A DNA stretch of 64,000 nucleotides, taken from Schizochytrium sp. TIO01. Lineage: Eukaryota > Protista > Bigyra: Labyrinthulomycetes. The stretch lies in NCBI GenBank assembly GCA_004764695.1, contig SMSO01000008.1, positions 372,001 through 436,000 on the forward strand. The letters run 5' to 3'. Numbering within the stretch: the stretch's first letter is position 1; every line of letters starts with the position of its first letter. Shown here in pieces: positions 5,274 through 33,633 of this stretch. The position numbers and the translations under genes are program-made. The notes below the pieces were generated by a model. That model was not told the DNA's origin. It made no database searches and worked only from the letters and a program-made list of their open reading frames with translations.

Positions 5274-6794
5274 ATGCACAGAGAAGGAGAAGAGAATGAA
5301 GAGGGCGAAGCTGGAAACCAAAGCGCCCTGGAGAGTGACCAGGGCCTCTTGCAGTTCTTTTGGGGGCTCGCCAGTCCACCTGGCGCAGACCAGAAAGATT
5401 CGGACGCTGATGATGGCAACAGCGACGAGGAGAACGACAGCGTGAATAAGAAGGAAGGCTACGATGACGACAAAGAAGGCGTAATTAGCCATGATCAACA
5501 ATCTTCTAATGTGGAACATACTAGTTTGCACGAAGGCAGCCACTCTGTCGAAAATAGCATTTCAAATGACCATAGGAAAGGTGAAAGTGGAGATGTCCTG
5601 GCAGACATTGCGAAAACGACCACAGAAAGCCTGCAAAGTAAGCCTTTAGAGCTTCATCCAGGAGAAGATGACGACTCAAAGAGATTCAAACGCAAAGCCA
5701 AATGGAGGAATTTAAGTGCAAGAAATGAGGAGCTAGAGTCCTTAAGACCAGTCTATCTCAGACGCATTGCAGAGCTCGAACAAGAGGTTGATGCATACCG
5801 TCTGGCGGGTGCAATCAACCTTCAAAAGGAGAACGAACTTTTTCGAGTTGAGATCTTTAAACATAAGGCTTTCCTTGCTAATGTCACGCAAGCCATTCAG
5901 GACACTACAAGATCTCTACAAGCAACTAATAGTGAGCATCTTCGATTGATCACTGAAGTCATTAACTCAAGTATATCTCGCATTGTTGGGCTGGTGCACA
6001 TGTCTACACAGTGGCAACGCTTTGATGAAATAGACCATGAATCTGGTTTGAAAATGGCTGTCTCCCTTGAGTTTCTCCCCCACGGCGTGCTTCCTCGTGA
6101 GTCCAAACGTATTAATATGCGATATGAAATTTTGCATGCTCCTGTCTCCGCAGACAACCTTCATCAAATCTTGATGTCGTTTTGGGGAAACCAAGATAAA
6201 GTGAGGAGTCTGTACAGTGCCTTTGACGTCTCTTCCACCTATCAAGTGAACTATATACCGATGGAGTCTCCTAGTTTAGATGAAGCAAGGAAATCACTTG
6301 GGGGGGGTACTATACAATTAATCAGGTTCAATGAAGAGAGTGCGACGGGCATCGTCACAGACTCGCTATATACTACCTGTACATCATCACGTGACCTTGT
6401 GCCGCAATCATTTGTCGCATGTGGAAATGACGAAGCTCTTAAAGAGGAAATCAACTCGACGATAGATCCAGGCATTGCAAATTGCCAAATATTCGCTAGC
6501 ATCTCAGACGACGACACGAAATCTCTTGCAGAAGTTGATATTGAGTCTACACTGACAGGCAAATTCTCTTTTGGCCATGTGGTCGTCCCCACGCATCATG
6601 CTAAGGACCTTTCGCATAGCATTATGATATTTTCTGTTCCCATGGGTTCCTTTGAAGCTATGCGAGACACAAGCGACGTTCTACAAGATGGAGGTGGGCT
6701 TCGAGGAACGTTTTCGGCAGCCTTCCACGGACACATGGAGATTTTCGCTCAGGAGATTTTATCTTTCACGGAAAATGCAGCAGCGACCGCATGA
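5274..6794 (+). CDS. bZIP-zipper + C-terminal START-like domain family protein, copy 1 (degenerate basic region)
   Basis: 506-aa single ORF with acidic N-terminus. Zipper NLSARNEELESLRPVYLRRIAELEQEV, second coil NLQKENELFRVEIFKHK, and family motifs VGLVHMSTQW, KRINMRYEI, DLVP, FGHVVVP, SHSIMIFSVPMGSF all align by eye with the other copies. The basic motif reads PGEDDDSKR instead of N-A-x-[AS]-C-R-x-x-R. Confidence 0.85.
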   Translation: MHREGEENEEGEAGNQSALESDQGLLQFFWGLASPPGADQKDSDADDGNSDEENDSVNKKEGYDDDKEGVISHDQQSSNVEHTSLHEGSHSVENSISNDHRKGESGDVLADIAKTTTESLQSKPLELHPGEDDDSKRFKRKAKWRNLSARNEELESLRPVYLRRIAELEQEVDAYRLAGAINLQKENELFRVEIFKHKAFLANVTQAIQDTTRSLQATNSEHLRLITEVINSSISRIVGLVHMSTQWQRFDEIDHESGLKMAVSLEFLPHGVLPRESKRINMRYEILHAPVSADNLHQILMSFWGNQDKVRSLYSAFDVSSTYQVNYIPMESPSLDEARKSLGGGTIQLIRFNEESATGIVTDSLYTTCTSSRDLVPQSFVACGNDEALKEEINSTIDPGIANCQIFASISDDDTKSLAEVDIESTLTGKFSFGHVVVPTHHAKDLSHSIMIFSVPMGSFEAMRDTSDVLQDGGGLRGTFSAAFHGHMEIFAQEILSFTENAAATA

Positions 6795-9048
6795 GCTTGA
6801 TAGAGCGCTTTTCTTCTCTTCTGGGATACTGGCATTTCTAAAGATTTCTCACTTGACCCAATTTAAGATTTCAAAAGCCTTGTAAAGCAATTGCGCGGTG
6901 TTGTGATCTAGAGGCGTAGTTGTTTCCATATACTCCCATGGGAGCCTATAATTGTGCTGCTTGTACACTTCAAATCCTCCTGGTTGAGCATTCATGTATG
7001 TCTTGATTCTCTCAGTGCCCATGCCACAGAGGGTCTTAACATGTGATATTTTGAGTCTCGAAGGGTCAATTTCATCGTTGCAGACTTTATACATATGATG
7101 CCAATATCTACGAACTAGGAAAGTGGTTTTCAAAGCAAACAGACATATTGGCATAGAGCAGCTCGATATTTCTGTAGGGGTACCAACTTTCTGTGTTTTC
7201 GCCAGTACGAGTAAGCACAACTAGACGCAGCCACATATATATGAAAACACCAGCATCCCACATTCAGATAATATCAATCGTAACCATCACTCATTGGGGT
7301 AGTCCAACGAGTTAGCTGCTAAAGACGCTGAAATCAGGACTTATTGGTGCTAAGAAGAAATAACGAAGTTTCCCTTTTACATTTTGAACTTACTTGGTCT
7401 TCTTGATCATTCAGTTATCTGAAGCGACTCCGATTACCCACGCAATCATAAGCTTCTGCCAAAAGTAGGTCCAAACCTGATTCATTTCATCCAAGTTAGT
7501 ATAGTTGAAGGATTCCCCAGGGCATTTGCTTCTAAAGCGAACAACGAAATCCTGGCGTTATCTTTGTAACAAACGTCGTTGCTGTTGCTCTTTATTTTAT
7601 GAATAAGTATTAGCTTTTGATTGTACACAGTTCCTTCCTTTGATATTGAGAAGCTAAAGCGACAACTATGGAATGAAGTTTGGGGAATAAATAGTCAGAC
7701 CTGCCATTAAAGTCAACTTTACCCCTCCTTTATCAAATCAGTAGTTTCCTTTATGTCCACAAACTACAGAACTAGAATTCAATATTGGCTAATTACTGTT
7801 GCAAACGTGGCAAACTCTGTAGCGTCTTTTTAAAGGTCAACTTAAGACTCGGGACCATGGTGTATCTAAGTACATTCCGTAGCTTTCACTTAGTTCTCAA
7901 CGATGTCTTCACTACTCAGGGCTTAGGCCTTAGAAAGGCCCGAAAGTATGCTGAGACTATGTAAGTCCTATGAAATACATTAACAGTTAGAGAATTAATA
8001 CTTGTCACTTGAATCCTGACCAGGCTCGCCGCACCAACAGCTGCTTCAAAGTCATTCACGAAGAAACCACCATATCAACCATGCCGTTTTACATATCCAA
8101 TCATGCTCGTTGAAAGTCCGAGGCGCTTTCGAGTTCGAACCTTATTCCTAGGCAAGGTCGTGGAAGCGGCAAGACGCTCGGCACGATTGGATAGTGCATG
8201 CTCTATCTACTAGGCAAAAGCAAAAAACGCGTGGGAGCTGCTGCCAGTCTTTGAGCTTAGCTTCGTGTCTTTAGCTTGGTCAACCAAAGCATTTTGCTCA
8301 AGCTTGTGAGTAGGTGGTTTGTGGTTGCCTCAATTTTATTGTGAGACTCGAAGCGACGTGAAGTAGCTTCAAGAAAGTACACTTATGCACTGTGTGGAGC
8401 CTTTTGCTGTTGTTGCACAGGTGGAGATGATCAAGGCAGTGCAAACCACACCAGTATTGCTCAATGCGACTCGATGCAAGCAGGGCAAAATAATTCTATG
8501 CAGAGCAGAACTTGCACTTTGACGTAGTTTTAAAGATGGATTACATAGGGAAATGCTGTGCATGTCTTGGTTGTTCGCGTAGTGCAGAATCGTGCACACT
8601 AGCAAGTACGGCTTCTCACGTAGGTTCTTGTGCTAAAATAACGATCAATCAATCTCTAATGCAACCGAGCGTATGCACAAGAACTAGTCACTGATGCCTT
8701 GTTGTCCGGGCTAGCATTTCGTTTCATTTATTCTACGCTAGCTTCTTCTTTACGGTTTTGCCGGATAAACTGAATTCAATCTACAAAGTGTTGCATTATG
8801 CATTATATCATGCTAGCGTAGGTTCAGAGATTTCAACGAAATTGGCAACTTATTAGAATGTGTCAATCAGAGAGCCGCAATGTACTTAATTTAGCCGCCA
8901 TAGAGAAGCGATACCCGCATAAAAGAGATACCTGGCCAAAGGGAGTAATTGATGGCATCATGTTCCCTCCAGCATATTTGCATCACCAAACAATTTATTA
9001 GTTGGAGCTTGTCTGTTGATAATTGTTCATTTAAATTGATTTAGACGT

Positions 9049-9087
9049 AGAAATTGGCTTCAGAAATTGGCTTCAGAACTTGGCTAA
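9049..9087. repeat. 13-bp tandem repeat AGAAATTGGCTTC x3 (third copy imperfect)
   Basis: Units at 9049, 9062 and 9075. Confidence 0.85.
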
Positions 9088-12000
9088 CCACTTTTGCAAA
9101 ATCAAGGCATTTTTTCAGGATCGAAGAATGTTGTAGCATTTTAAAAGAAAAAAACTAAGGCACGAGAAGGAAAGAGAAACGCGGCCAAATAATTTTGCAG
9201 GTACAACTGAGCTGCGTCCTTACCACAAATACTGGAAATGTTGCTTTCATATAATATTTTTTATTTCAAAAGGAGGGAACTCTCTAAGTTGGGTATGCAT
9301 CTAGTAAGTCTAAAGGTAAGTCTAGAGAAGACATAACCATTGTGAAGTAGTACTCTTATATCCAATGATTATTGAAAGTACTCTTCAAGCTAAACCAACA
9401 GTGTCTCAAGTGTTACTGAGCGCAGTGCAGGCCCCTTAAAAAAAAAAAAAAAAAAAATACTCACATTGTCGTGTACCACTAGATTATACCACCTCTGACA
9501 TCGTCTACCCAAGCTAGACGTGGATTGCGCAAGCTGACACGTCTTAGTATGCAGCTGTGATGTTTTTGTTGTTTTGTTTTTTCGTAAGCAGCGGCCAAGA
9601 CATAAAGCCGTGGTAGTAATAAGGTAATCAATTAACCAGGTATCTCGTTGAATATTTCTGGTTTTAAACAATCTGTTGGACACTAAGAAAACCGCATCAT
9701 ATTTTTGGCTGAGTTCTTGAGCCTCTTTTTTCGCTTAGCTATAAATTGCCGATCTCGTTCGCCATCTCAGACTCGCGAGCTCCTCCCATTAGATATTTCG
9801 CTGGCGTTTGGTATCCATACTTTATCGGATTGTCGAGCCAATGGCACATGTGTCACATTTTGCATTCATAGAATTGATGAATGCAGAGTTAGGAATGTCT
9901 GTGAGTGGTCCTCAGCACTTTCGAACTTGGCAAGAACTCACAGTGTTCTTTATCCTTGTAACAGGAAATTCAGAGTGCAGACATGACTAGGAAGGGTTAC
10001 CTGGATAACAGTAGTCAGGTGTCAAATAGTATGTAGTAGGTAGGTAACCTACCTACTGTTGGGTTGAACGTCCTTTCGAAAATCTGTTTCGTGGCACATA
10101 TTTTGAAAATCGAAAATCCAGAACAACAATGCTTCTGCATATGGTTTTGAGTTATAACATCTTTTAGAATGCTCACTTAAATACTAATTATATGCTTTGC
10201 AGGGCAGGCGTAAGCAAAGAAATGCTCTTCGCAACTATAGGCATTTTGTTTTCACCGGCTTGCTTTGAATGATTAATCCATTAACTACAAAACTCAGCTA
10301 TTTAAGTTGTAGTGAACCCCAGTTGAGACTAAAAGAAGTGCAATTGCATATGGAGAGTAGTGTAATGTTATTGTTGTTTACCTAAGTGATAGTAGAAGTT
10401 AGTAGGCGACATTCTCTAATCGATGCAGTGTTCTTAAATCTATCTGCCCCCTCAAAAATTACAAGGGGCGAAATATAAAGAAGACAACAGACGATTGTAG
10501 GCTGAAAGGCGAGTAAAATTGCGATGCAACTGGCCAGTAATTCGCTCTAGTTAGATTTTACTCAGCTGATATGTAAATAATGTTCGGACCCGTGCGGGCC
10601 ACAGCACGACCCAATGCAAAGGTCTCTGACTCGCTGCACTCGTAGCGGATGGCATTTTACGTACATATACAATCGATCAACAACTTGGCAAATGTTTTAC
10701 AAGGTCTGCTTTAGCACCAAGAAGAAATGTTGATTCGTGCCTGTACCTGCGTCGCAATCTCTACGCTGATGTTACAAATTCACTTGGCTTTTTAAATGGT
10801 AGAACTTGTTGAGAGAGACGAGACACGTATTCTCGCTCAAGGTATAACGCAACCGTTTTATTTATGTTTGCCATAAGCATTGATTGATTCTTCTTTTAGA
10901 TCTACAAGGGTTTCTCTTTAAAATCTCTTTTCTAACGGAATGAGTATAGCATATGGGAAAATAAATTCTTAATTTGATCTTGGTGAAATCCTTTCTTGAG
11001 ATCTTGAGCTTTTTAAAATCTCGTTTCCATATGCTTTCTTTACGCCAGAATGGCCTTCAGTCCATGTTTTGCTTCTGTTGCTTGTGTTGCTGTCTACTAT
11101 CAGTGATGCTGATGTGTTTCTTCGTGTGAGTGCTCAGTGGAGATGAGAGAAAAATGAAACGCTAATCCCCCACAAAGAATTAAGAATTAAAAATTAATTA
11201 ATGTTTTAGGTACCGTAGATTTTTATTTAAAACAGATATTTTTTTAATGTTTTTTAAAGTACAATATGAAAAAAAGAAATGATAAATAAAACAAATAAAC
11301 GGCAGTTAAACTGACTGTGAGCGTTTCCATCGCAATATGGCGTATCGTGCCAAGAAGGCAGTACAGAGCCACATCAACCCCGAGATGCTCGTTCCTTCCG
11401 GTCTCTCTAGCTCCGCTCAAAGCTTGCAGGGCCACAGTGGCCATGCCAGAAGAAGAGCTTTCTCCTGCCCTAGCTTGCTTGACCTGGAAACTGGCATGTG
11501 TGCGTGCAAGCAACAACGAACGCCCAACAAAAGAAGCCAAAATGTTTTTCATCAAACTAAAAATAAAAGTAGCAAATGAATCACTAAAACCTTCTTAGCT
11601 ACTGTTCTAAAACGCCCAGTACTACGAGTCCAAAGCCAAAACACGCGACATTACAGAAAACACGGAGTTCCTGAGCTATGCATCATTTTGCGACCCCCCG
11701 GGTCTCGCAGGCCAAAGCTGCAGTCGGCGTTTTATCGTCTACCTAGGTACCCAGTTCTTCGTAATTTTACAAAAACAAATGGGAACATGATGCAATCAAT
11801 GCATTCATGCACTGCAAGTAAATCGATTATACCTATTCGTTGTGGCGTTTGTCTGGTCTTGGATGGCAAGGCAAAGGCTGCCTTGGAGTTTTCTCATAAC
11901 GCGAATACTGAATTGATACTCAATTTTCGATGTTCGATTTTCGTCTCCAGGCTCCAAGCTTTTCAACCCGCCTCCCAAGACCTGTTGGTGATATCGCTGC

Positions 12001-13993: not shown

Positions 13994-16072
13994 ATGGCTT
14001 CGGGGGTTCCGATAGTGGCGTGGGAAGCCCTCGTTGCTGCTGACGACGGCAGCAACTGGCGCACGGGTTTCCTTAACACGATCGTCGACGACGGCCCAAA
14101 CGGAGAAGACCAGCGAGGCGAGCAACCCTGCCACGACCAGTCTCTTCATGAAACAAACAGACCTGCGAGGACTATAGGCAACAGCCAGTGCGAGCTTGTC
14201 ACCCTTGGCCGCAACGCACGGAACATTAGTGACAGTCACAGCAGCAGCTTGCCGGAAACACCAGTGTTTTACCATAACGAAGAGGGCAGCGCACAAGATG
14301 GGTACTATGGCGCTTTTGGAATACCCCCAAATCGAATGGGCTGTAGCAGTGTAATGGATGCGGACGAATCTACTGCAACCGGTGCCCTTGAGGGATTTGA
14401 GACTCGGATCAGGTCCATTAATGAGTCAAAGTTCGAGGCTAAGGCCGTCAAAAAGACGAAGAACTTGAAAGAAAAAACTTGTTTATCTACACAAGGATCT
14501 GCATTTGAGCAGCTCAATGGACAAGAGAATTTGTCTGCAATTGAGATGAGAACAGAAATTGGTATCAAAAGAAGAAGAACTGCATTCAAAAGAAGCAGTA
14601 GCAGCAACTCGGGGCGAAGATGTGGTGACGGATTCAAATATCAAGGTGATGATAGTGAGGACGACGCCGAGGATGATGAAGACGATGATGAGGAGCATGG
14701 AAGCGCAAAGGTTGGAAAATCCAAGCCAAAACGTGTGAACAACGCTGAATCGTGCAGAAGGAGAAGACTTCGACGCAAGGCAGATGAAGCGTCGCTGAGG
14801 CGCAACGTGACGAAACTTGAGAGCGACCGCGAATTGTATTTGATGAGGATTGCGGAGCTTCAACTGGAGGTGGACTCCCTGCAAATGTCATGCGAAGTGA
14901 ATTTACAGCACGAAAATGATCTTCTGAGGACTGAAATTGCGACACACAAATCATATGTAGCTAGAATTGTCCAGGCGATCTCGAAACAGCCTGGGATGCT
15001 AGTTGAAGAACAGATACGACTAGTCTCCGCTGCCACTAACGATGCAGCTGCACAGCTCACAGGCATGGTTCATGTTTCACTTGCATGGCCTCTAGTTTAT
15101 GCTACCCAACACCCAACAGGTATGGGAATGCGAGTCTATATGGAGTTCCTACCAAAGATGGTCTCTACTCTTGAGAAGCAACGAATCAATATTCGCTTTG
15201 AGATTTATAACGCACAACTTTCTGCCGAAAATCTTCACACCTGCCTATCGCAGCTTTGGCTTGCCAACGATCACTTCCCGCCCCTGCACGGCGCAAGGCT
15301 GCAATCGTCACCGGCATCGCCTTGGCAATTTTCGAACCTTTCTGCTTTTGATACAACTGTTGGTAGAATCAAGAACAGTAAAACTAGCCTGATGAAATGC
15401 TCTCGAGATCTTCTTCCTAGAGCATCAAGTCCACTCGAGTTCACATTAGCAACCTCTCTCACCCGGTCTGATCTCGTCCCATCCGCCTTTGTTATCAGGC
15501 GCCCCGCGGGAAATTACCCCCAAATCGCTCAACAGTCTTTGTTCCAAACGGTCGACTCCACACTGCCACACCATGCAAATAAGGTCACTCTACCAGGTAA
15601 ATTTGGAGCTTCAAATCAACCTTCGAAATTGCAAGCGCGATCTCTGCAGCAACCAATGCAATCAAAGCAACGGCAAAACCCTTCTTCCACGATGATATCT
15701 AAAGTAAATTCGTCAGGAGCAAATCGGCAAGCTCAACTGCAATTGGTGGAGCCTGGTGTTGTGCGCTGTTATATCCATGCAAGCTCATCATGCGATAAAG
15801 AATTAGAACGCGCTGGAGCGATAAACACCAGTACACTGCAAAGCAAGGTTGTTTTCGGCCACGTTGTAACGCCTGGAGCTAACCCGACTGTCTCGCATTC
15901 TGTTTCCGCCTTCTCTTATCCTCTAGGAGCCTTTTCGGATTACTTGTCAATGGACCAGGTTGTGAGACCAGACAATTCGCTGACAGATCTCAGCCGTCAA
16001 GTTTTCACTGCTCACTTTGGGCGCATTGCACAAGAGATCTTCTATTTCACAGATTCGATGCAGTGCACATGA
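13994..16072 (+). CDS. bZIP transcription factor with C-terminal START-like domain, copy 2
   Basis: 692-aa ORF. Acidic tract, then NAESCRRRR-x9-L-x6-L (N codon at 14741; canonical N-x7-R-x9-L spacing), then NLQHENDLLRTEI. Family motifs GMVHVSLAW, RINIRFEI, DLVP, FGHVVTP, FSYPLGAF. Confidence 0.9.
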   Translation: MASGVPIVAWEALVAADDGSNWRTGFLNTIVDDGPNGEDQRGEQPCHDQSLHETNRPARTIGNSQCELVTLGRNARNISDSHSSSLPETPVFYHNEEGSAQDGYYGAFGIPPNRMGCSSVMDADESTATGALEGFETRIRSINESKFEAKAVKKTKNLKEKTCLSTQGSAFEQLNGQENLSAIEMRTEIGIKRRRTAFKRSSSSNSGRRCGDGFKYQGDDSEDDAEDDEDDDEEHGSAKVGKSKPKRVNNAESCRRRRLRRKADEASLRRNVTKLESDRELYLMRIAELQLEVDSLQMSCEVNLQHENDLLRTEIATHKSYVARIVQAISKQPGMLVEEQIRLVSAATNDAAAQLTGMVHVSLAWPLVYATQHPTGMGMRVYMEFLPKMVSTLEKQRINIRFEIYNAQLSAENLHTCLSQLWLANDHFPPLHGARLQSSPASPWQFSNLSAFDTTVGRIKNSKTSLMKCSRDLLPRASSPLEFTLATSLTRSDLVPSAFVIRRPAGNYPQIAQQSLFQTVDSTLPHHANKVTLPGKFGASNQPSKLQARSLQQPMQSKQRQNPSSTMISKVNSSGANRQAQLQLVEPGVVRCYIHASSSCDKELERAGAINTSTLQSKVVFGHVVTPGANPTVSHSVSAFSYPLGAFSDYLSMDQVVRPDNSLTDLSRQVFTAHFGRIAQEIFYFTDSMQCT

Positions 16073-18095: not shown

Positions 18096-19991
18096 ATGCG
18101 CTCGTCGCGACCGCGACCGCGGCCAGAGCCGCCCCATGCTCATCAAGCACCTATTTCAGTTTCCTCTTCATCTCAGTGGCCTGAATTGTGGCCGATGGCA
18201 GCAAGCGGACACGCCACACGCGCCATGCCAAGGTTCACGACACCTAGACCGCCGTTCCTGCCCCCGGTGATGCAGCCGGGGCCGCCCCAAAGCTATCCCG
18301 AATTCCAGCAACATGCTCTAAACGGCCACGCAGGGCTGATGCACCAGTGGGTACCTTGGTACGGTCCTCCTATAGTGGCAGAAACCTCAGGAATCGTCAT
18401 GAAACATTACAAAGGAGGCAGCAATGTTGGCGTTCATAACGAGAACTTGAAAGCAAACGCGACGAAGAAACGAAGAAACTCGCCGAAAAGGTTGGCGGAG
18501 ACGCATCGAACTCCGAAAAGAAGGCGACCAGGAGACTATAAATGTATTGTGGATGCAGAGTTCTTACCGACTTCGGAATCTATGACCTGGACGACCTCTC
18601 CAACAGGGCTCAATTTGGGCCCTTCGAAAACGAAAGCGATTCCCGAAACAACGATAAGGGAAAGAAAACCAGAAACAACAATAAATCCGACGTTACCCTC
18701 AAAAGCGAAAAAGTCGTCATATTCTGTGTCTAGAAAAGCACAGGAGATGAATAAAGTGAAAAGGGAGATAACGAAAACGGTGAACTCACGAAATGCTGAA
18801 GCTTGCCGCAAACAACGTGAGAAGCGTAAGGAAGCTGAGAATGAGCTAAGAAAAGCGAATCAAGAATTGGAGGAGTCACGAGAGCTTTATCTTAGGCGCA
18901 TTGCGGACCTTCAGTTTGAGGTAGATGTGCTTTCACTGGGATGCCCTATGGATCTAGTTCAACAGAACAAATTGCTGCGTAAGGAAATTCGGATCTACAA
19001 GGCAGTACTTGGCGATATTAAGAATGCTGTTGTGGATCATCCTGGTATACTTGTAGAAGAGAGTGTACGCTGCTGCAAAGGTATTATAGAAAGCTCGCAA
19101 ACACAGGTCTTAGGCATGGCATGCACCTCTCGCACATGGCCACATTTATGCACAATTAGTTCATTAAATGGGATGCCCATGCGCATATCCGCTGAGCTAT
19201 TACCTAAACATGTTGCTCACAATGAGGTTCAACGTGTTAACCTCCGTTATGAGGTCCTAAATGTTCAAGCGGAGGCATCGGATCTGCATGTGCTACTACA
19301 AAAGTACTGGCTCAACGAAGTTCTTGCTCACACCATTGACTCCACACGTGGTGCCTCACACGTGCAGAATGGCGACAAGATCCCTAACAGAGAGAAGCCT
19401 CCTCAAATGAATGAAGCAAGGAAGATGCCTTTAACTTGGCGGTATGAAGAATTGGACGCTGACGCAATATTAGGCCGCGAAGTCCGGTCTGTACTCGTAA
19501 CTGATAACTTGCATCTCTTTGAAATTCAGGAGCACCATCGTGGAGTAGCAAATGGCAATTCACCCATCATGACGTCCAGCAAAAAGCTGAGATTCCAACC
19601 TGATGTCCTTTCATGTCAATCTACAAACAGCTTTGCGAACGCTCGCAAGACTCATGAACCTGCACAGATTCTTTCATCTGAAGAAAGCTCCTTTATTTAC
19701 AGCAGCATGTCTTGCGCTGCAGAGTTGAAAAAAATTAATATTCCCATGAAGAACACTCTGGTGTCTAAATTTATTCATGGGCATATAACGATACCAGCGC
19801 CTTCTTTGAAAGGATCCCCTAGGTCTCATTTCGTTGCTGTGTTTTCGCTTCCTGTTGGAGAGTTTGCAATCATGCGATCTCTTCGGGACATGATCAACCC
19901 AGATGGTTCTGTAACCGAACCGTACAAGCATATTTTTCATGCGCACCTGGACTTTGTCGCTAATCAAGTTCCACGGCTCTCAAAAAAATAG
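18096..19991 (+). CDS. bZIP transcription factor with C-terminal START-like domain, copy 3
   Basis: 631-aa ORF with Pro/Gln/His-rich N-terminus and basic clusters (KKRRNSPKR, PKRRRP). NAEACRKQR-x9-L zipper (N codon at 18792). Family motifs GMACTSRTW, RVNLRYEV, HGHITIP, FSLPVGEF. Exact start codon uncertain (several downstream Met). Confidence 0.9.
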   Translation: MRSSRPRPRPEPPHAHQAPISVSSSSQWPELWPMAASGHATRAMPRFTTPRPPFLPPVMQPGPPQSYPEFQQHALNGHAGLMHQWVPWYGPPIVAETSGIVMKHYKGGSNVGVHNENLKANATKKRRNSPKRLAETHRTPKRRRPGDYKCIVDAEFLPTSESMTWTTSPTGLNLGPSKTKAIPETTIRERKPETTINPTLPSKAKKSSYSVSRKAQEMNKVKREITKTVNSRNAEACRKQREKRKEAENELRKANQELEESRELYLRRIADLQFEVDVLSLGCPMDLVQQNKLLRKEIRIYKAVLGDIKNAVVDHPGILVEESVRCCKGIIESSQTQVLGMACTSRTWPHLCTISSLNGMPMRISAELLPKHVAHNEVQRVNLRYEVLNVQAEASDLHVLLQKYWLNEVLAHTIDSTRGASHVQNGDKIPNREKPPQMNEARKMPLTWRYEELDADAILGREVRSVLVTDNLHLFEIQEHHRGVANGNSPIMTSSKKLRFQPDVLSCQSTNSFANARKTHEPAQILSSEESSFIYSSMSCAAELKKINIPMKNTLVSKFIHGHITIPAPSLKGSPRSHFVAVFSLPVGEFAIMRSLRDMINPDGSVTEPYKHIFHAHLDFVANQVPRLSKK

Positions 19992-21323: not shown

Positions 21324-21355
<32 letters not shown>

Positions 21356-22017: not shown

Positions 22018-22048
<31 letters not shown>

Positions 22049-23142: not shown

Positions 23143-23227
23143 GTATGTATGTATGTATGTATGTATGTATGTATGTATGTATGTATGTATGTATGTATGT
23201 ATGTATGTATGTATGTATGTATGTATG

Positions 23228-23261
<34 letters not shown>

Positions 23262-23356
23262 TGTATGTATGTATGTATGTATGTATGTATGTATGTATGT
23301 ATGTATGTATGTATGTATGTATGTATGTATGTATGTATGTATGTATGTATGTATGT
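23143..23356. repeat. Long (GTAT)n microsatellite, ~53 units
   Basis: Read directly; a single interruption near 23231. Confidence 0.98.
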
Positions 23357-23552: not shown

Positions 23553-23566
23553 TATTATTATTGTTA

Positions 23567-23622
<56 letters not shown>

Positions 23623-23662
23623 GATTATTATGATTATTATGATTATTATTATTATTATTATT
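23553..23662. repeat. (TTA)n microsatellite ending ~35 bp upstream of the copy 4 ATG
   Basis: Read directly; a few TGA/TTG variant units. Confidence 0.97.
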
Positions 23663-23696
23663 TTCCCCGAGAGAAACAATCGATCGACTTTTAAAG

Positions 23697-25397
23697 ATGG
23701 ATAACAAAGGAAAAAGGGGAGCAACAAAACCTGAATCAAAGCGACTTCCTCCAGCAATGAAGTCAGCACCTCGAGCGGCAGCTCTGCAGAAGGACAGCGA
23801 CGACCTGGTCCTCGCACTTGTCCGGGAGGACCCCAACGATGAGTGGATCGTGGAGCCGCAGAACGCAATGGCACCAGCCCCAGGGACGGGCGTGTCCGTG
23901 TCTGTGTCCGGCATGAAGGCCCCAGGCCCGACGTCACCGACTTCTTCTCCAGGACAGTCCTGGCGGCGTGATGAGTTTGACTCGGACGCAACCTTTCGCA
24001 GCATCTCGGACGGAAGCTTTGCCCCCAAAGGGTTAACCGGAGAAGACACTTATGGCGAAGAAGACGATGATGAAGAGGGAGACGGATTTCGTCGTCGCAA
24101 AAATGACCAAAACGATGATAATGATACCTTTCACAGTAACGCAGAACTCAACAGGACGGGATCGCAAGGTTCCGGTGATGGCTCTGGTGCTGGGCCCGGG
24201 TCTGCAGCAGCGAGAGGTCGCAATGCAGCGGCGTGTCGCAAGCAGCGACAGAAACGCAAAGCAGCGGAAGAGAACTTGAGAAAACATGTGGCAGATCTCG
24301 AGGCAAATCGTGACCTCTACCTGCGTCGCATTGCGGATTTGCAGTTCGAGGTTGACACGATGCGCATGGCTGGCACAGTGGATTTGCGCAAGGAAAATGA
24401 GCTGTTGCGGATTGAGATTCGCAAGCATAAAATGCACATTGCGGAGATGGTCAAAACCGTAAGCAAATATCCAGACATGTACTTGGAAGAACGTGTTAGA
24501 ATTCTGAAGAATGTTGTGGACAGTGCTCTTTCGCAGATTGTAGGCATAGTACACACATCATCGAGATGGGATCCTCTTTACACAGTGAAAAACGAGTCTA
24601 GTGGGCTAGAGATGCGTGTCTTCTACGAACTTCTTCCAAGACATCTACCTATGGACCAAGCAAAACGAGTGAATTTCCGTTGCGAAATGCTCAACGTGCA
24701 ACGCGACCCCGCGTCATTGCACTTTCTCATGTCCAGTTTTTGGTCCCAAGAGGCCAACCTAAAGAATGTACACTCCTCCATGCCTAATGAAGAACGCGCC
24801 ACCTGGTCTATGTTGGAACTTGACTCTCCGGGCCTCCAAGAAGCCAAAAATATTCTTGGTGAAAACAACATTCGTCTCTCAGACTGCGAAGAGGTGCGAG
24901 ACGGAACTCTCTTACAGAAGGTAACGTTCTTCTCCTGTCAAGGAACTCGTGGGCTTGTCCCGCACGCCTTCCTTGCGCATGGTTATGACGAGGAGTCTCA
25001 CAACAACGCGCTTGATTCTGTGGACTCTGGTATGGTAGACTGTCTTTTGCACGCAAACACCACATGCGACCAAGAGCTAGCCAACTCAAACATTGCTACT
25101 AATGCAACAACACTCACGCGATACATTCATGGCCACGCTGTTATTCCATCAAACTACAAGCAGGATCTGTCTCACATCATATCTGTTTTTTCAATTCCTT
25201 TTGGCGAGTATGCAAATTTAACCTCTGTACAGGATCTATTGACCAAGGACCACAAGCTCACTCCGGGATATGCACAAAGTTTTCAAATTCAACTTGATCT
25301 TATGGCTCAAGCCATCACCTCAGGTGTAGTTCCACATGACCAAAGTGATGAACTTGTTGCCGCAACCACACCGCCTCCACCTGCTGAAGATAAGTAG
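23697..25397 (+). CDS. bZIP transcription factor with C-terminal START-like domain, copy 4
   Basis: 566-aa ORF. NAAACRKQR-x9-L zipper (N codon at 24222), DLRKENELLRIEIRKHK, GIVHTSSRW, KRVNFRCEM, GLVP, HGHAVIP, FSIPFGEY. Confidence 0.92.
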   Translation: MDNKGKRGATKPESKRLPPAMKSAPRAAALQKDSDDLVLALVREDPNDEWIVEPQNAMAPAPGTGVSVSVSGMKAPGPTSPTSSPGQSWRRDEFDSDATFRSISDGSFAPKGLTGEDTYGEEDDDEEGDGFRRRKNDQNDDNDTFHSNAELNRTGSQGSGDGSGAGPGSAAARGRNAAACRKQRQKRKAAEENLRKHVADLEANRDLYLRRIADLQFEVDTMRMAGTVDLRKENELLRIEIRKHKMHIAEMVKTVSKYPDMYLEERVRILKNVVDSALSQIVGIVHTSSRWDPLYTVKNESSGLEMRVFYELLPRHLPMDQAKRVNFRCEMLNVQRDPASLHFLMSSFWSQEANLKNVHSSMPNEERATWSMLELDSPGLQEAKNILGENNIRLSDCEEVRDGTLLQKVTFFSCQGTRGLVPHAFLAHGYDEESHNNALDSVDSGMVDCLLHANTTCDQELANSNIATNATTLTRYIHGHAVIPSNYKQDLSHIISVFSIPFGEYANLTSVQDLLTKDHKLTPGYAQSFQIQLDLMAQAITSGVVPHDQSDELVAATTPPPPAEDK

Positions 25398-27351
25398 ACT
25401 CTCTCCCTTTAATTCGTTTCTCTGTGTTTTCCTCTCTCTTATATATTTTCATATATCTGAAATGGACCACAACACGAAGGGAAAAGCCTACAGCACAGCA
25501 TGTATGTACTCTTTTGCCAGGCGCAAACTGATGAGGTCTCTTCAGCATCAAATACGATTTCGTGAAAATTGTTGTTTAAAAAAAAACGATGTGATTAATC
25601 ATCATGGTCCAAGCTTAGAGTGGAGGAAAGGCATGTACAATTAGTATGGCCGAAACAGCTACCTACTCTTTTTTATATATACCTGTTTTAAAACAAGCTT
25701 GCTTTAGGTGCTCTTTTAAAGGCTTCGTTCAAGCCAGATATTTTGAAAATCAGAATTGGAAACAGATTTTGAGAAAACTCGTATGCGTTTTGTTGCCCTT
25801 TTTTTTTGTTTAGATTACTAGAGTATTTAACTCTAACAAAGTGAAACAAGAATGATTCTATTGCTCTTTTGTGTAATTTAAATTTCGGGTTCATATTTAT
25901 CTATAGAAGGTCAACTCCAAAATGGAAGTTATCATCCAGCTTAGTGGCAAACCTTATCCAACGCAAGGTATACGCAAGGTAATCACTTCCTCGCATCTTT
26001 CCGATTTGTATATCCCATCCTGTATCCGTAACCTATATACCATCCTTTAACACTTCACATTCTTTGACAGCCATTGCTCTCTTGTTAGACTACCTCTCCA
26101 CGCTCCGCGATACAAGTTAATCTGCAATATTTTCTGGGGCAAAAGATCAAAATCTCAATTATAATTTTTTGACATCATGACGCTGCCGTGCTGTGCCCCA
26201 AAACAATTACTCAAATACTTTTCATTTCATATCTAAAAGTTACACTCCTGCTCATATAATTACCCTATCTTCGAGCGAAGAGACCTTCCCTCAGATAGCT
26301 GGTTTTCAAGCAGAAGAAAAAGGGCTCACTCGACCGAGATTCAATATGTATCGTGTGGAGCCTTTGTAGTTCGATTGGCTGCTGTGACGGCTAAAAGTAA
26401 GAATCAAAGAATACTCAATAGCTTGCATCTAGATAAAAGTAGAACTGATGGCTGAGGATGCACATGGATATTTAGCATCTGAGGCCAATCATTAGTAATG
26501 ACTATTTTTACTGTGCTATATATTTATCAACTGAAATCATAGACAGTTTCAGAAATTCGACTCCTATGCCAGTTGATCGATAATTTATATGGCCCAATTC
26601 TTAACTAGTTTTAACCGTTTTCGATTGTAAATAACAAGTTTCGACATGATCTCTTCAGTCTCTTATAAAGGGCACCGTCCATTTCCTACTAAATTAATTT
26701 TTCTTCATCTCCCCAGTTCATCTGGAGCTAGCTAGCATCCGTAGCTCGCCCCTGCCCCCCTGAACCTGACTATGATTCGTAACATTAAACTTCCCCGTGA
26801 GGTATCCATGATCTTCACATAGATAAATCCACTGCCTTGATAGATTTGCACATTTAGCAATCGAAAATTGAGAGATTATTCAATATCGTTTAGGGTAACC
26901 TATTTAGAACTCGAAACGAACCAAACGGGAGAGCTTTCTAGTGCAGAGAAATTGACAATCTGAATAGAGTTTTACTATGATCTTTTTTGGTTTTCTGAAG
27001 CCCTGGAATCCCGTCAACTTTTAAACAATTGTGAGAAAGCGTGTGCTAAGATACGGCAAATCTTCTCCCTCTTTGGCGTTCTAAGGAAGAGCTGATACAC
27101 ATATTTTGTTCGAGTTTGTTCCAAATCTGGAGTATTGCCTATTTGTGAGATAAGACTATACTTGCGCAGAGTGCAGTCAATAGACGCCAATTAACTTTCC
27201 ATAATTGCCACTAAACCTCGTAATTACATTCACTGTTTACACCTTTGGCGTCTTTAATCTTAATATATCTGGGAGCTCATTATCTCCGTACCTAGTTACT
27301 ATGTAGGTGGGTTTTACCAAAAAGCAAAACAACTTCTCTAGCTTGAAACTT

Positions 27352-28550
27352 AAAGCAGACGAGGCAAACTTGCGGTGCAGCATCGTGGAGCACGAGATCA
27401 ACCGAGAAATTTATCTGGAACGTACCGTAGAACTTCTGTGCAAGGTTGAGCCCATGCGCATGGCAGATCTTGTTGATCTTCGACGCTGGAACGAGCTCCT
27501 TCGTGAGGAAATTCCCAAACACAAAAGGCGCATTAAAAAAGTGATGAAAGTGGTGCAGCGTCAGCCAGAAATGACCCTTGAAGAACGAGTTCATTTGCGT
27601 AAAGATATTGTGGATAGTCCTGTTTTCCAGTGATAGGGCTTGTACACACATTGACCAGTTGGCAGAATCTGACGAGCAAGGGACACAAGGACTTGATTCT
27701 GCACGTGCGCTATGACCTTTTCCCTAGGAGTATACCTTGGAAGAAACAAAGCAAATAACTTGCAGATTGAGTTTATGCATATCCCCACTTTCATCAATTT
27801 ATGTCCTCTTCATTGCCGTACAAGGAACGCTTTAAAGTGGTACAACGAAAACTAGTTAAGGAAGACCGGCTTGAAGTGATGGAGACTACTAATTTACCAG
27901 TTTTCAAAGAGGAAAAAATGTTGTTGTCCAATGAATGTATTCGTGTAAGCAAATGCCTGGATACACGAGGGGACAAGGAACACTCTTCATACTACTTTAC
28001 TTCGTCTTTCTAGGTTTTGACAAGAGCTTTGCTATGCACAACAATCACAATTTCTTGGGATATGGGAACACAGTCTTTGTGACTTACTTTGTAGATTCTA
28101 ACACCTCGTGTAGAGTTGTGACGACGACCTTAGATTTAGAGAGAGCAGATCAGAGCCTAGAAATCGATCCAGCTTACGGCAGTAAGCCATATGCCTATCA
28201 TATGATGTTCAATCAACCTCAAATAAAGTCAGCTGCACAGAGGGCGAGGCAAAGTCTTTAACGCCAGCACTTGAGGCCAGTCCAAATGATTACAATAATA
28301 GTATCCTTGGTAGCCTTTTAGGGGTACAGGTATGCGGAGTTCAATTGAAGGCTCTTGTAGTGCCTTGATGATGACATCAATGCCAATCTGGAAGCACTTA
28401 AAGGCACTGTCAATCGCTGATATGCTCAATGAAGACGGGTCGTCCTCGGAAGTATTTTGCGACAGCGTTCGCTTTCAATTAGAACACTTTGCCTCCCTGT
28501 TGCCAAATGCGCATCGCAAGGGCAGCTCTGTAGCAGGAGAACCTGAGTAA
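27352..28550 (+). pseudogene. Disrupted copy (copy 5) of the bZIP/START-like family
   Basis: KADEANLRCSIVEHEINREIYLERTVELLCKVEPMRMADLVDLRRWNELLREEIPKHK...EERVHLRKDIVDS aligns with the copy 4 zipper. After a -1 frameshift at ~27630 the next frame continues VIGLVHTLTSW (copy 4 IVGIVHTSSRW). The middle is fragmented by stops and shifts. The last fragment MTSMPIW...IADMLNEDGSSSEVFCDSVRFQLEHFA matches the family C-terminus. No basic region or ATG-led N-terminus seen. Confidence 0.85.
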
Positions 28551-31500
28551 AATTTCGGATTAGTATGTAAGTACCTACTGAGCATTTAAAGAACAAGAAA
28601 TCATGATGGGTTCTTAAGAGAATTAGTTCACTCGAATTGACACTTTTTTTTAATAACACAGTTGTAGAGCTCATCGCTTCCCCACTAACCAATTTTTATT
28701 CTTCGATATATATATATATATATATATGAAAACCAAAGGATTACTTATTTACAACTTTAAGTGTCTTCATCCGCTATCTAAGAAGATATTCTCTAGCGTT
28801 GCCTTCGCTTCTCGAAGTACCCGCCTGGGATCACATAATCGACCTCCTGGAGCTCCACCTGCAGTCTGTCGAAGATCGTACTTATCTTGAGCTGGCCGAC
28901 GCAAAACTCTGCAAGTTCTAAGAGCAGATCAACTTCCGCGGCCATGCAGTTTCTTTCCAATCCGCAGCCTGCGCCAAATATGCGCCGTTCTTTGTTCCTG
29001 CTGTGCCAGCATCGATCAGGAATTCGGTGTGGTCTCGCGGGCGTGCATTTGCGTCGGACAGAGACATTGCCCCGGGTCCACCCGCGCAGAGTATCAAAAA
29101 TGCCGTGCGAGCGAGCGAGCGAGCGTGCGTGCGAAAGTTGCTCGATGCGCTCTTTCGCTTCGGCGACTTCGTTCAGAGTTCTGTGAAGAGGGCTGAGGTG
29201 CGCTCAGTCGTGCCCAGATCGTGGGTTGTCTTAAACCCTGGAGTGACCAACTTTTGCTCAAGACCTTTTCTTTCTGTGGGCAGTGGTGCGAAAAAGTGCG
29301 AATTGTGCTATTTCTAGAGTTTTATACGTCCATTTTCTCTCTTTCTTTTCCTTTTAGGTTGAGAAATGAATGAGCTTTGCTTCGGCTGTGATCATTGAGG
29401 CGACCGCCGACGCCAACGCGCTGTGCATCCATCCTCCAGCTTGCTTGGCTTGGCTTCATCGTGGTCCCAAGTGGCCTGACTGACCTTTAGCTCGCTTCTT
29501 CATGAAAATCTCGCCGAGTTTTGGTCCCAAGTTTCGCGATTCTAAGCGCAAAGAAAGAACAGGGAACCAGGCAGTACCTTCCGTGCCAGGAGACGCGAGC
29601 TTATCCGCACGCTTTGCCGACAACGCTGCTCTCGAAGTAGAGTGCGGCCCGCAATGAAGCAGTTGAAGTCCTCGCGACGGGCTCTAAAATTGGGGAAGAA
29701 AGGAATCGCTCCAAGTTCTTCGCAGCGTGAAATGAGCCAAAAAATTACAGAAAGGACAAACCTGAGCCCAGAAGAAATGTGAAGCGCACTGAGGGAGGCG
29801 CTGCTAGCTGCTAGTGTTTTCAATATGCAGCGGGCACGCGCCAAGAAGCAGTGGATATTCAGGATTCTGGCTTCAAGCCGAAGCTTCTGTCAAGACTGTG
29901 ACTTGACTGTAAACTATTTTGTAGCCTGGTCCATTGTGTTTCTTTCCTCTTCTCTCAAAGGAATAAGAGGTGATCAGCTGACTCGTTCTCGTAGCAACGC
30001 CGAGCCTGAGATTCCGGTGTGCATCACGTCCAAGATCTCCAACATCTCGACGCCATTGAGGAGCCTGCTATTTTAGAGCAAATGCGACTGCAATTTATAT
30101 CGTGCGCTTTTTGTTGTTGTTGATATCCAATGGTCACAAGTTACCCATTTTCGTAGTTTAATTATAGGAGATCCAGACAAGAAAAGACCTTGATTTCCCT
30201 CGTCAACCTCTGAAGATCCCTGTATTTGGCGGGTAAACTGAGAGAGGGTTGGGCACCACCAGTGCAAATGATTGTCCGCTGCGATACCGGTTCGCCTGTC
30301 CTCAGCTTCGTCGGGGAGCTTTCTCCGCGAGGGCAACGCTACTTGTCGCATACGCGAGGGTCCTCCAATTTGTTATTGCTTATATGCTTAATAAAATAAA
30401 ATAAATTTATATTTATTTTTTAAATTAATATATAAAAATAATCATCGTTTTGATGTTGTTTGCCTTCGCAAAGCAATCCAGATGTACGCAGAACTTCTCC
30501 TCAGCCTCGTCCAAATACGCAAATATCGCTCGTAAAAGTACCCTACGAGTGCCTGAATATTTCTGCGATTTTATTTGCGCTCTTCAATGCCAGCAGCCCT
30601 CTTGCCGCGTCTTCGGGCCCTCGCCGTTTTGCGCCGTTCGCGGCGAGAAGAAAGTCCTTCATTCATTTTTTCTTCTCTTTTCTTTTGTTCTCTTTTCTTG
30701 TCTTTCAAGCTATGGCTATGGAAAGGTGTAGCTACTACTAGGCATTTTAAGGTAATAAATAATTTCTTTCTTTTTCTCAAAACAATGTATACGTACGTGT
30801 AGATTCTTCAGGGTTCGTCTTCTGGATTTCCCACTTGCCAAACTGCGCTATAGCTATGCGAATACAGTGAGTTATACACCGATAACCTACTTCAATGGGG
30901 GCCTACAAGTGAGTTATACTCGGCCCCAAGTCGGGAAACGAGTGGCACCAAAAAGAACGCATGCATGTTTTTTCCTTCATTTCTGTGAAAGATCAAAGCC
31001 GCCGCCAGCCCTCGGCTCAAAATACGCAGGGCTTGCCTGAGGACTTACATAACAGTTACATTGCCTCCTTTGAACACAGCATGAATTCAGTCTAACTGAT
31101 CAGAGGCACTCCTTCAAGCCGAAGCAAGGAGGCCAATCATTCTGCTTTTTTGGTTTCCTCACCTTAAAATTTAGATTTATTCTAATTGAAAATAAAAATA
31201 AAACGTACTAATACCAACAATAGCAGCTAAAAGAAAAGGAGCACTAGGCAATCAGTAGATAGCACTACTGTGAATTCTCATAACAAGTAAGTGAAAAGAA
31301 AGAAAGCCTTTAGAAAACGATGGTGAAGCGCAAACAAAATGCGGAAGGACTAATCGGACAGCAGGTCTCGGGTGGCAGGCAAATGAATACATGCTCAGCT
31401 ACTTGAAACTTGAAGGCAGAAGCTGCAAAGGCACGGCATTAGCCAGCCTCGCAACGTGTTATCCTGAGGTACGTACCCTACATCTGCGAATCAACCAATT

Positions 31501-31854
31501 CCTGAGGTTTCTCTCTCTAGAGAGAGGAATGGGCCATACTTTGTGGGTCATATAGCTCATAGTATCGTACGGGCTACAACTCAGGAATGAAAGCTATAAC
31601 CTATAGTACGCACTCCAAAGTAAGCGCAGTACTATGCGTTGTAAAGGTATCGTATACACTTGGTTATAGGCTATGGAGCGAGTGGAATTGTCAAATAGGA
31701 GTTTAACTCCTACCACCTTAGGCCACTTAGTTAGGAGTAGAACCAACAGAATGAGTGAAGAAAGAACAGAAAGATGTATAAAATTCGTCATCGAAAGTTT
31801 TTTAGATGAATTTCTCGATTCGCCAGACCCAAATCGATCAAGAACCTGCCCGCA

Positions 31855-33633
31855 ATGAAGGGCGGCATCGACCTTGAGGGCCTGGAGGGCGTGCCGCCCG
31901 AGGCAGACCTTCTTCTTGCTTATGGCGTGGGACCCCCTCTGGCTAGCTCTGCAGGGCTGTCCTCATCCTCGTCCTCCTCAAACTCAAACTCAACCTCCTC
32001 GCCGTCATCCTCGGCGCCAGGGCGTGGCCAGGCAGTTCCGTTCTCGCTCACAGGGCACAACATACGGCATGTGAACGGTCTGGTGGGCCCAGATATTGCC
32101 GATGGGGAGGACGATGAGACCATCGCTGCCATCGCAGAGCTCGTGCGTGAAGACCAGGCTCGAGAAGCTGCTGCAGCTCGAGCAGCGCAGGGCCTTTCGC
32201 CAGACGAAGACGCGTCGCCTTCGCCTGCTTCCACGCGTTATAGCTTTGAGGACAATGCAAGCGGCAGGAAACAGATGTCTGGCACTAAGAGTAGGAATGT
32301 TGAATTTAGTGGCGAAACATTTGTTGACGAAGTCGTGGACATTGGTGGAATTGACGGCATTGACGGCATTGATGGCACCGATGGCAACCTTAATGACGAG
32401 GATGATTGTGATGACAGCTCTAAAGTGGATTCGAGGAAAGCTGTCCGTCGAGCTAGAAATGCCGAGGCCTGCAGACGCACTCGCAGAAAGCGAAAGGCCC
32501 ACGAGGAGAATTTAAGGCTTCGAAATGCCGAGCTGGAGGCCAGCAGAGAGCATTTTCTGAAGAGGATTGCAGATTTGCAGTTCCAAGTGAATTCCTTGCG
32601 CATGACGGGAACGATTGATCTAAGGAAGGAAAACGAGCTACTACGAGCAGAAATTCGCAAACATAAAGTTTACATTTCTAATGTGATCGACGCAGTGCAG
32701 AAAGAACCGCAGGTAAAGCTCGAGGAGCGTGCACGGCTGCTTAAACGTGTGGTAGATGGAGCGATATGCCAGTGCATTGGCATGGCTCACACTTCCATTA
32801 ACTGGCGTGAAATGTATTCGCTGCGTCTTGATGATGGAATGGAAGTCAGGTTCCTGTTTGAAACATTGCCGAAGGATGTGCCGCTCGCGGAGGCAAAACG
32901 CATTACTTTGCGCTGCGAGGCTTACGCGATCCCGGCAGAACCCCAGGGCTTGAACGCAATCTTGTCCAATTTATGGGCAGATGAAAAGCGTAAGGAGCGC
33001 TTCAGTCAGATCATCACGCCGCCAGAGGGTATTCTACGGAGGTTTCTGACCTTTGTGTGCCCCGAGCTCGATCAAGCGAAGGAGTTTCTTGGAGATGAAC
33101 GCCTTGGCGTTTACACATTTGAGGAGGCAAAAGCAGGTGATTCACCCACTCGTGTTGTAATGTCTTGCTGCACAGCCACGCGTGACTTGGTCCCTGATGC
33201 AATTCTCACACTAGGTAAAGAGAGGAACTCTGCGGGGGCTGACTCCAGCTTCGGAGAGTTGACTGCATCTGCAGCAGCCGCAGCGGCATCGGGTGCGAAG
33301 GGTAACGCCGGGGTAGTACCCTGCTGCGTATTTGCTGCAACTACATGTGGTGACGAACTTAAGCGCGCTCATATTGAGGTGGGCCCAGACGCATCGTTAG
33401 ATGCGAAGATTTTCAATGGCCACGTAGTTGTACCCAGCAGTGATGATCCCAACCAGTGCCATCTTGTGTTAATTCTTTCTACTCCAATTGGTGATTTTCC
33501 TGGTCTGACGGCGCTTGGTCATATTGTGGATGAGGATGGTCTTGCATCAGAAAATTTCAAACAGTATTTTGCAGCACACTTAAATTTTTTCCTGGATGAA
33601 CTTGTGGAAGCAGCCAACAAGAATGCACCTTGA
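31855..33633 (+). CDS. bZIP transcription factor with C-terminal START-like domain, copy 6
   Basis: 592-aa ORF with Ser-rich and acidic N-terminus. NAEACRRTR-x9-L zipper (N codon at 32458), DLRKENELLRAEIRKHK, GMAHTSINW, KRITLRCEA, DLVP, NGHVVVP, LSTPIGDF. Confidence 0.92.
   Translation: MKGGIDLEGLEGVPPEADLLLAYGVGPPLASSAGLSSSSSSSNSNSTSSPSSSAPGRGQAVPFSLTGHNIRHVNGLVGPDIADGEDDETIAAIAELVREDQAREAAAARAAQGLSPDEDASPSPASTRYSFEDNASGRKQMSGTKSRNVEFSGETFVDEVVDIGGIDGIDGIDGTDGNLNDEDDCDDSSKVDSRKAVRRARNAEACRRTRRKRKAHEENLRLRNAELEASREHFLKRIADLQFQVNSLRMTGTIDLRKENELLRAEIRKHKVYISNVIDAVQKEPQVKLEERARLLKRVVDGAICQCIGMAHTSINWREMYSLRLDDGMEVRFLFETLPKDVPLAEAKRITLRCEAYAIPAEPQGLNAILSNLWADEKRKERFSQIITPPEGILRRFLTFVCPELDQAKEFLGDERLGVYTFEEAKAGDSPTRVVMSCCTATRDLVPDAILTLGKERNSAGADSSFGELTASAAAAAASGAKGNAGVVPCCVFAATTCGDELKRAHIEVGPDASLDAKIFNGHVVVPSSDDPNQCHLVLILSTPIGDFPGLTALGHIVDEDGLASENFKQYFAAHLNFFLDELVEAANKNAP

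Follow-up and report, generated by a model that had tools for sequence, protein, structure and literature searches.

The tandem array of paralogous genes in a 64,000-nucleotide stretch of the genome of Schizochytrium sp. TIO01 (contig SMSO01000008.1, here C7, positions 372001–436000; assembly of 64 Mb in 37 contigs), hereafter called the window, raises the question of what kind of protein these genes encode. A sequence-only reading of this DNA had described six co-oriented, mutually divergent genes as candidate ligand-sensing transcription factors, each joining a basic leucine zipper (bZIP) to a second coiled coil and a START-like domain. As given by the open reading frame (ORF) listing and its translation, the array comprises five intact, intronless and co-oriented paralogs on the + strand, sharing 24–36% identity with one another, while the sixth locus is a decayed pseudogene. 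The encoded proteins are probably dimeric bZIP transcription factors, whose C-terminal half is formed by a diverged StARD-type START domain, a fold binding lipids, sterols or carotenoids. Positions below refer to the window (Table 1) unless a contig is named.

Organization of the array

The five intact copies match one another in tblastn with E-values from 1e-35 to 1e-80 (27–42% identity), which places their paralogy far beyond chance. Copy 1 shares 24–28% overall identity with the other intact copies, in alignments extending over the C-terminal two thirds. The layout outlined by the sequence-only reading is seen in the alignment of the copies, in which a variable N-terminus is followed by a basic region, a five-heptad zipper, a short A-G-T-V-D-L-type break, a second coil (L-R-K-E-N-E-L-L-R-x-E-I) and a conserved domain of roughly 280 amino acids, which opens with a helix closing on an invariant tryptophan and has a long helix at its end. 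In copy 2, a loop of the START-like domain carries a low-complexity insertion of about 65–70 amino acids. None of the ten intergenic ORFs of at least 100 amino acids in the array contains a Pfam family, which agrees with the earlier statement that no other convincing gene lies between the copies, the comparison of ORFs leaving room for spliced genes.

The C-terminal domain

Predicted structure supports the reading of the C-terminal domain as a diverged StARD-type START domain. The AlphaFold2 model of copy 4 residues 212–566, obtained from an alignment of 75 rows, is of high confidence (mean predicted local distance difference test (pLDDT) 85.4, predicted template modelling score (pTM) 0.83) and is concordant among five models. 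Following the second coil, it contains a long helix (model residues 52–79, reaching Trp291), three strands, two short helices, six more strands, among which two helices are inserted, and finally a long helix at the C-terminus (model residues 312–331), which is the element order of START. The helix leading to the invariant tryptophan and the long C-terminal helix, both postulated from the sequence, are thus present in the model.

When the model was compared with the PDB by Foldseek, the check that the sequence-only reading had proposed for this region, the best matches were almost exclusively START domains, including all of the first 25 listed. Alignment with VIA-align gave a Z score of 16.5 to the START domain of ACOT11 (202 aligned residues, root-mean-square deviation 3.2), followed by CERT (14.4), MLN64 (14.1), STARD4 (13.7), StAR (13.1) and PCTP (12.3), at a sequence identity of 6–14% to the structurally matched domains. 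When 48,161 representative chains were aligned exhaustively, independently of Foldseek, the top 12 chains were all StARD-type START domains (Z 16.1–10.4), separated by a gap from the other Bet v1/SRPBCC proteins (Z up to 8.3). The START/helix-grip topology suspected from the letters is accordingly recovered in the predicted models. A distant member from Hondaea fermentalgiana (GBG33176.1), whose sequence match is limited to the first 176 query residues, is predicted (pLDDT 81.8) to form a long bZIP helix (residues 80–142), another helix and a START fold like that of copy 4, with a Z score of 16.4 to the ACOT11 START domain; the two models are not fully independent, as many alignment rows are common to both.

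The basic region

An alignment of 18 non-redundant genomic copies gives the basic-region consensus R-N-A-E-A-C-R-R-x-R-x-K-R-K-A, where the first zipper leucine lies ten residues past the second signature arginine (N-x7-R-x9-L). This signature had been ascribed to the whole array; it is present with five heptads in copies 2, 3, 4 and 6, reading N-A-x-[AS]-C-R-x-x-R, but is absent from copy 1 and the pseudogene. The basic region of copy 1 is acidic (HPGEDDDSKRFKRK), reading H-P-G-E-D-D-D-S-K-R-F-K-R-K without N-x7-R, and that of the copy at C7:516064 is likewise degenerate.

The family profile matches solved bZIP structures, namely 7aw7 (7e-8), C/EBP alpha (1e-5) and GCN4 (1.5e-4). The suggested HMMER check with bZIP_1 and bZIP_2 came out divided, as 23 of the 70 relatives match bZIP_1 (E ≤0.01; best E 9.4e-10) while the window copies stay below the cut-off.

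Cysteine is conserved four residues after the signature asparagine in copy 4 (24225–24227) and at the equivalent position in copies 2, 3 and 6. Classical bZIPs have alanine at this position, and threonine or serine is found in the degenerate C7:516064 copy and in the copies on contig C32. This cysteine could be a redox-sensitive DNA-contact residue. The family copies at C32:2454031-2470278 have valine in place of the signature asparagine itself (R-E-I-V-A-A-A-S-R-V-T-R) and in this resemble the asparagine-substituted bZIPs reported for oomycetes.

The zipper, the second coil and the predicted dimer

In the second coil of copy 4, the a positions are occupied by N234, I241, I248 and V255 and the d positions by L230, L237, H244 and M251, and a one-residue register skip at G226/T227 separates it from zipper 1. 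The zipper-loop-zipper proposed earlier is therefore retained as two real coils, while its "loop" is a six-residue break with a one-residue skip and not the loop of the plant-type zipper-loop-zipper (ZLZ). In copy 4, Pfam also placed HTH_Tnp_IS630 on the second coil (E 5e-5), a match dismissed as a coiled-coil artefact.

The bZIP part and second coil of copy 4 are predicted to form a parallel, in-register homodimer. Residues 168–264 modelled as a pair reached an interaction score (ipSAE) of 0.39, against 0.02 for the best control, with at least 95% of contacts shared by three runs and a partner pLDDT of about 80; the mark applied to such predictions is reached by 21 of 30 proteins solved as same-chain pairs and by none of 23 solved as single chains. 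The contacts join the same residues across both coils, including 201:201, 208:208, 215:215 and 222:222 in zipper 1. Asn234, invariant in 70 sequences, occupies an a position in the copy 4 model and pairs with itself (N234:N234). Asparagine at an a position, as Asn16 of GCN4, is a residue favouring parallel dimers. Absence of dimerisation had been named as grounds for abandoning the proposal, and the model, as far as a prediction goes, points to a dimer.

The family in the genome and in the Labyrinthulomycetes

The whole-genome profile search returned 48 matches, 13 of them on a near-identical second contig, C11. The array extends beyond the window and belongs to a C7 cluster of at least 16 copies, with ten more copies upstream, between 320881 and 371526 (nine on the + strand and one on the − strand), and three more downstream (at 516064, 526845 and 595092). 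Additional clusters are located on C32, C33, C30, C13, C31 and C4. The segment C11:4784-58079 repeats C7:338969-392000, the 13 family genes on it being about 99% identical and identically arranged, so that C11 represents either another haplotype or a duplication of very recent date. All 30 loci retrieved have an intact ORF of 351–736 amino acids, except the C11 counterpart of copy 3, the N-terminal part of which contains a TGA. Between 11 C7/C11 pairs, 55.5 non-synonymous and 45.5 synonymous differences were counted, and the pooled ratio of non-synonymous to synonymous differences per site (pN/pS) of 0.35 indicates moderate purifying selection. The pair of copy 2 differs by 11 non-synonymous and 0 synonymous changes. 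The bZIP and START parts of the member at C30:8639333-8640557 are separate profile matches, the first ending at 8639686 and the second starting from 8639706, which suggests a short intron or a frameshift in a family that is otherwise intronless.

The sixth locus of the window (27307–28547) is a decayed pseudogene, the pieces of which were found with a profile of the five intact copies against the six-frame translation. The first piece lies in a frame different from the remainder, owing to one frameshift near 27620–27630, and in-frame stops after 27755 and 28010 split the later pieces; the N-terminus is gone and the basic region is degenerate. At this locus, the contigs of other strains contain additional 1-nt insertions after 27534 and 27743, as expected under neutral decay.

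A full HMMER scan of 1.84 billion representatives, addressing the taxonomic range as had been suggested, identified 91 relatives. A search of a protein atlas gave no usable match. Those bearing names are from Hondaea fermentalgiana (at least eight, including two adjacent gene pairs), Mucochytrium quahogii and Aplanochytrium stocchinoi, all of them Labyrinthulomycetes, and relatives are also found among the transcripts of MMETSP0958 and MMETSP0964. Judged by the named records, the family thus extends throughout the Labyrinthulomycetes, and these named members are annotated only as "BZIP domain-containing protein" or as hypothetical. The MMETSP taxon id 87120 points to a fungus and was left out of the taxonomic assignment. 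A weak match from the dinoflagellate Durusdinium (E 6.7e-5), made up of two short stretches with the best at query residues 11–103, was not counted as a member.

Probable transcription of copy 4

Copy 4 is covered by discrete, collinear and joint-free RNA-like contigs from three studies (runs X13, X15 and X4), none of which covers the region downstream of copy 4 at about 25.9–27.2 kb, which is in keeping with an mRNA of about 2.1 kb that undergoes no splicing. The pseudogene is covered by short pieces only, at 3–4x depth (runs X1 and X4). The contigs over copy 4 start at 23737–23741, about 40 nt past its first ATG (23697), and either the start codon of copy 4 may be that of Met21 (23757) or the assemblies may break at a repeat. 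Upstream of copy 4 lie a (GTAT)53 microsatellite (23143–23356) and a long AAT/ATT-type repeat (about 23567–23690). In run X1, a single contig of 3130 nt continues for about 1 kb (25866–26847) beyond the point where the other runs show the 3' end, and this extension may reflect transcriptional read-through, a second transcript or the presence of DNA in the run.

Comparison with known systems

The literature search found no paper on a bZIP joined to START without a homeodomain and none containing "bZIP-START", and the best-ranked papers on thraustochytrids made no mention of a START domain. Among the matches listed for papers pairing "bZIP" with "START domain", all concerned plants (HD-ZIP proteins and PYL receptors), the HD-ZIP papers being retrieved under bZIP because domain databases label the HD-ZIP zipper as bZIP. 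The earlier supposition that this is not a characterised family is in agreement with this search, and bZIP-START is a new domain combination of known parts.

The closest parallel in design is provided by the plant HD-ZIP III/IV proteins (PHB, REV, GL2 and PDF2), which likewise combine a DNA-binding module, a dimerising leucine zipper and a START domain, and whose paralogs also have diverged START domains. The START domain of plant HD-ZIP proteins binds lipids and controls the activity of the transcription factor (10.1101/2025.07.29.667167; PMC8455945), and the recently described dSTART domain, like START itself in plants, binds phospholipids and governs both the competence to bind DNA and the localisation (10.1101/2025.07.29.667167). 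Plant START domains are also reported to promote dimerisation (PMC11564692; 10.1101/2025.07.29.667167). In the plant proteins, however, DNA is bound by a homeodomain, whereas here the bZIP basic region would do so, and Pfam detects no homeodomain in the window copies or in 70 members; the present family is thus only analogous in design to HD-ZIP and not part of it. It also differs in lacking the SAD/dSTART and MEKHLA domains, in having a six-residue break instead of the plant ZLZ loop, in a START domain that does not pass Pfam PF01852, whereas the plant one does, and in occurring in Stramenopiles instead of plants.

Within the stramenopiles, the aureochromes share the "inverse" effector-sensor order, with an N-terminal bZIP effector and a C-terminal small-molecule sensor. 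Their sensor is a flavin-binding LOV/PAS domain, whereas the present family has no Pfam match to PAS/LOV and has a C-terminal START fold; aureochromes are reported only from photosynthetic stramenopiles, in contrast to the heterotrophic Labyrinthulomycetes considered here. The animal StARD proteins (ACOT11/STARD14, CERT/STARD11, MLN64/STARD3, STARD4/5, StAR and PCTP) are the best structural matches (Z 12–16.5 over 190–210 aligned residues), but they are lipid carriers or enzyme-linked domains of 6–14% identity, none of which is fused to a DNA-binding region. The plant TGA (clade D) factors also have a bZIP followed by a C-terminal domain, which is DOG1 in their case, reported to hold a fatty acid and of an all-helical fold instead of a helix-grip. 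The solved TGA3 and TGA7 entries match the family profile weakly and in the bZIP region only, and this profile shows no homology to TGA beyond the bZIP part.

Proposed function and alternative explanations

Under the proposal that these proteins are dimeric bZIP transcription factors with a START domain, the basic region and zipper 1 would bind DNA as a parallel dimer, and the second coil would lengthen this dimer and set the two START domains side by side. As reported for the START domains of plant HD-ZIP III/IV, a hydrophobic ligand in the START pocket would then alter the stability of the dimer or of the protein, its affinity for DNA or its entry into the nucleus. The copies would read different ligands and could heterodimerise, and copy 1, which has an acidic basic region but keeps both coils and the START domain, would serve as a non-DNA-binding partner.

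The distribution of pairwise identity among the paralogs is consistent with such a division of labour, being 47–53% in the basic region, 53–55% in zipper 1 and 47–51% in the second coil, but 16–40% in the START domain and 16–25% in its C-terminal helix. The conservation of the DNA-binding and dimerising part next to the divergence of START is what would let different copies read different ligands, and from the sequences it suggests a conserved DNA-binding and dimerising platform carrying a diversifying sensor, in keeping with the sequence-only reading. A ligand-holding cavity, ligand sensing by the START pocket and combinatorial dimerisation of paralogs are inferences.

Several observations weigh against this proposal. 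The START family PF01852 is absent from the window copies (E ≤1) and from 70 members (E ≤0.01), and finds ten other loci in the genome, none of which belongs to the bZIP-START family. Alignment of the family START region by hhalign to these ten canonical START domains gave a probability of 0.6%, which is not significant, so that descent from START is argued from the fold; the family profile likewise has no match for the C-terminal domain among PDB sequences. As sequence methods are blind to it, the domain is a "cryptic" START recognised by predicted fold. All window copies remain under the Pfam bZIP gathering thresholds, the best being copy 6 with 19.5 bits for bZIP_2 against 22.3. The dimer pass may stem from the model's memory of solved bZIP dimers, and the RNA nature of the sequencing runs is a guess by the tool and is not on record. 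Finally, some START-like domains function without a ligand.

In an alternative that is unlikely on balance, the proteins are bZIP transcription factors whose START-fold domain binds no ligand and serves only as a module for dimerisation, stability or partner binding, its divergence setting the choice of partner and not that of ligand. It would accommodate the lack of any sequence-level match to ligand-binding START families, the poor conservation of the START regions among paralogs, the C-terminal "lid" helix included, and the promotion of dimerisation by START domains reported for plants (PMC11564692; 10.1101/2025.07.29.667167). Against it, the fold corresponds to the full-size, cavity-forming StARD type, with more than 200 aligned residues and Z scores of 12–16.5, and not to a reduced helix-grip, and is retained across the Labyrinthulomycetes.

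Two further explanations are considerably less probable. That the proteins are not transcription factors at all, but work as dimers in lipid transfer or membrane tethering, the basic stretch attaching to acidic membranes and the coils doing no more than pairing the START domains, is very unlikely, since N-A-E-A-C-R-R-x-R stands at a fixed distance from the first zipper leucine in most copies, the family profile matches solved DNA-bound bZIP structures (7e-8) and relatives pass Pfam bZIP with E-values down to 9.4e-10; it gains some ground from the fact that most solved START proteins are lipid carriers, from the Pfam bZIP scores of the window copies and from the missing DNA-contact signature in copy 1 and the C7:516064 copy. 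The least probable explanation holds that the START likeness comes from a modelling artefact or from convergence on a helix-grip, the C-terminal domain having an unrelated fold. Here the evidence for START being a predicted structure, the alignment rows common to the two models and the identity of 6–14% to START domains have to be set against the high confidence of the five concordant models (pLDDT 85, pTM 0.83), the agreement of element order with START, and the gap among the 48,161 chains between START matches (Z ≥10.4) and the rest (≤8.3). The one stretch aligned by hhalign, a G-x-x-x-x-P strand pair, also lies at the corresponding place, although the alignment is not significant.

Coordinates and neighbouring genes

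The features of the array are collected in Table 1. Two large genes on the − strand lie downstream of it (35594–38440 and 48770–51502), which contain DAO, FAO_M, GCV_T and GCV_T_C domains and are of the dimethylglycine or sarcosine dehydrogenase type. Each has an open antisense frame, as is typical of GC3-rich coding sequence.

Table 1. Window positions of the array genes, the parts of copy 4, the pieces of the pseudogene and the contigs covering copy 4
Feature	Position	Strand	Description
Copy 1	5274-6794	+	506 aa; zipper, coil 2 and START-like domain intact; signature Asn absent
Copy 2	13994-16072	+	692 aa; bZIP-START paralog
Copy 3	18096-19991	+	631 aa; bZIP-START paralog
Copy 4	23697-25397	+	566 aa; bZIP-START paralog; copy used for modelling
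Copy 4 basic region	24213-24266	+	aa 173-190, R-N-A-A-A-C-R-K-Q-R-Q-K-R-K; Asn, Arg at +8, first zipper Leu at +18
Copy 4 leucine zipper 1	24267-24365	+	aa 191-223; d positions L194, L201, Y208, L215, M222
Copy 4 second coil	24384-24464	+	aa 230-256, after six-residue break M-A-G-T-V-D
Copy 4 START-like domain	24483-25328	+	aa 263-544; helix a1 to invariant Trp291, strand sheet, C-terminal helix 523-542
Copy 5 (pseudogene)	27307-28547	+	collinear fragments matching the family HMM; frameshift, stops
Copy 5 piece	27307-27630		profile positions 195-287; E 4e-25
Copy 5 piece	27618-27755		profile positions 290-329; E 1e-3
Copy 5 piece	27771-28010		profile positions 350-423; weak
Copy 5 piece	28314-28547		profile positions 504-556; E 6e-4
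Copy 6	31855-33633	+	592 aa; bZIP-START paralog
Run X13 contig over copy 4	23741-25865		2125 nt
Run X15 contig over copy 4	23740-25862		2121 nt
Run X4 contig over copy 4	23737-25674		1938 nt

Implications for thraustochytrid biology

A wider proposal, which is possible but is put forward tentatively, is that a nuclear-receptor-like system has evolved in the Labyrinthulomycetes independently of plants and animals. In such a system, at least 30 loci would encode homo- and heterodimerising bZIP-START factors, the pocket of each coupling a different lipid, sterol or carotenoid to transcription, with members devoid of a basic region (such as copy 1) as inhibitors, and the whole would form a main control layer of lipid metabolism in these oil-accumulating protists.

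In the literature searched, START-coupled transcription factors are a plant feature built on homeodomains. If the reading of the present family as bZIP-START factors is true, it would represent a second, independent origin of lipid-gated transcription factors, based on bZIP and located in a heterotrophic stramenopile, with a logic comparable to that of nuclear receptors. It would also be an example of START domains that Pfam and profile comparison miss but that the predicted structure shows clearly. Docosahexaenoic acid (DHA), squalene and carotenoids are produced industrially with thraustochytrids, in which the transcriptional control of lipid metabolism is poorly known; more than 30 candidate lipid-sensing regulators would thus become targets for knock-out, ligand screening and strain engineering.

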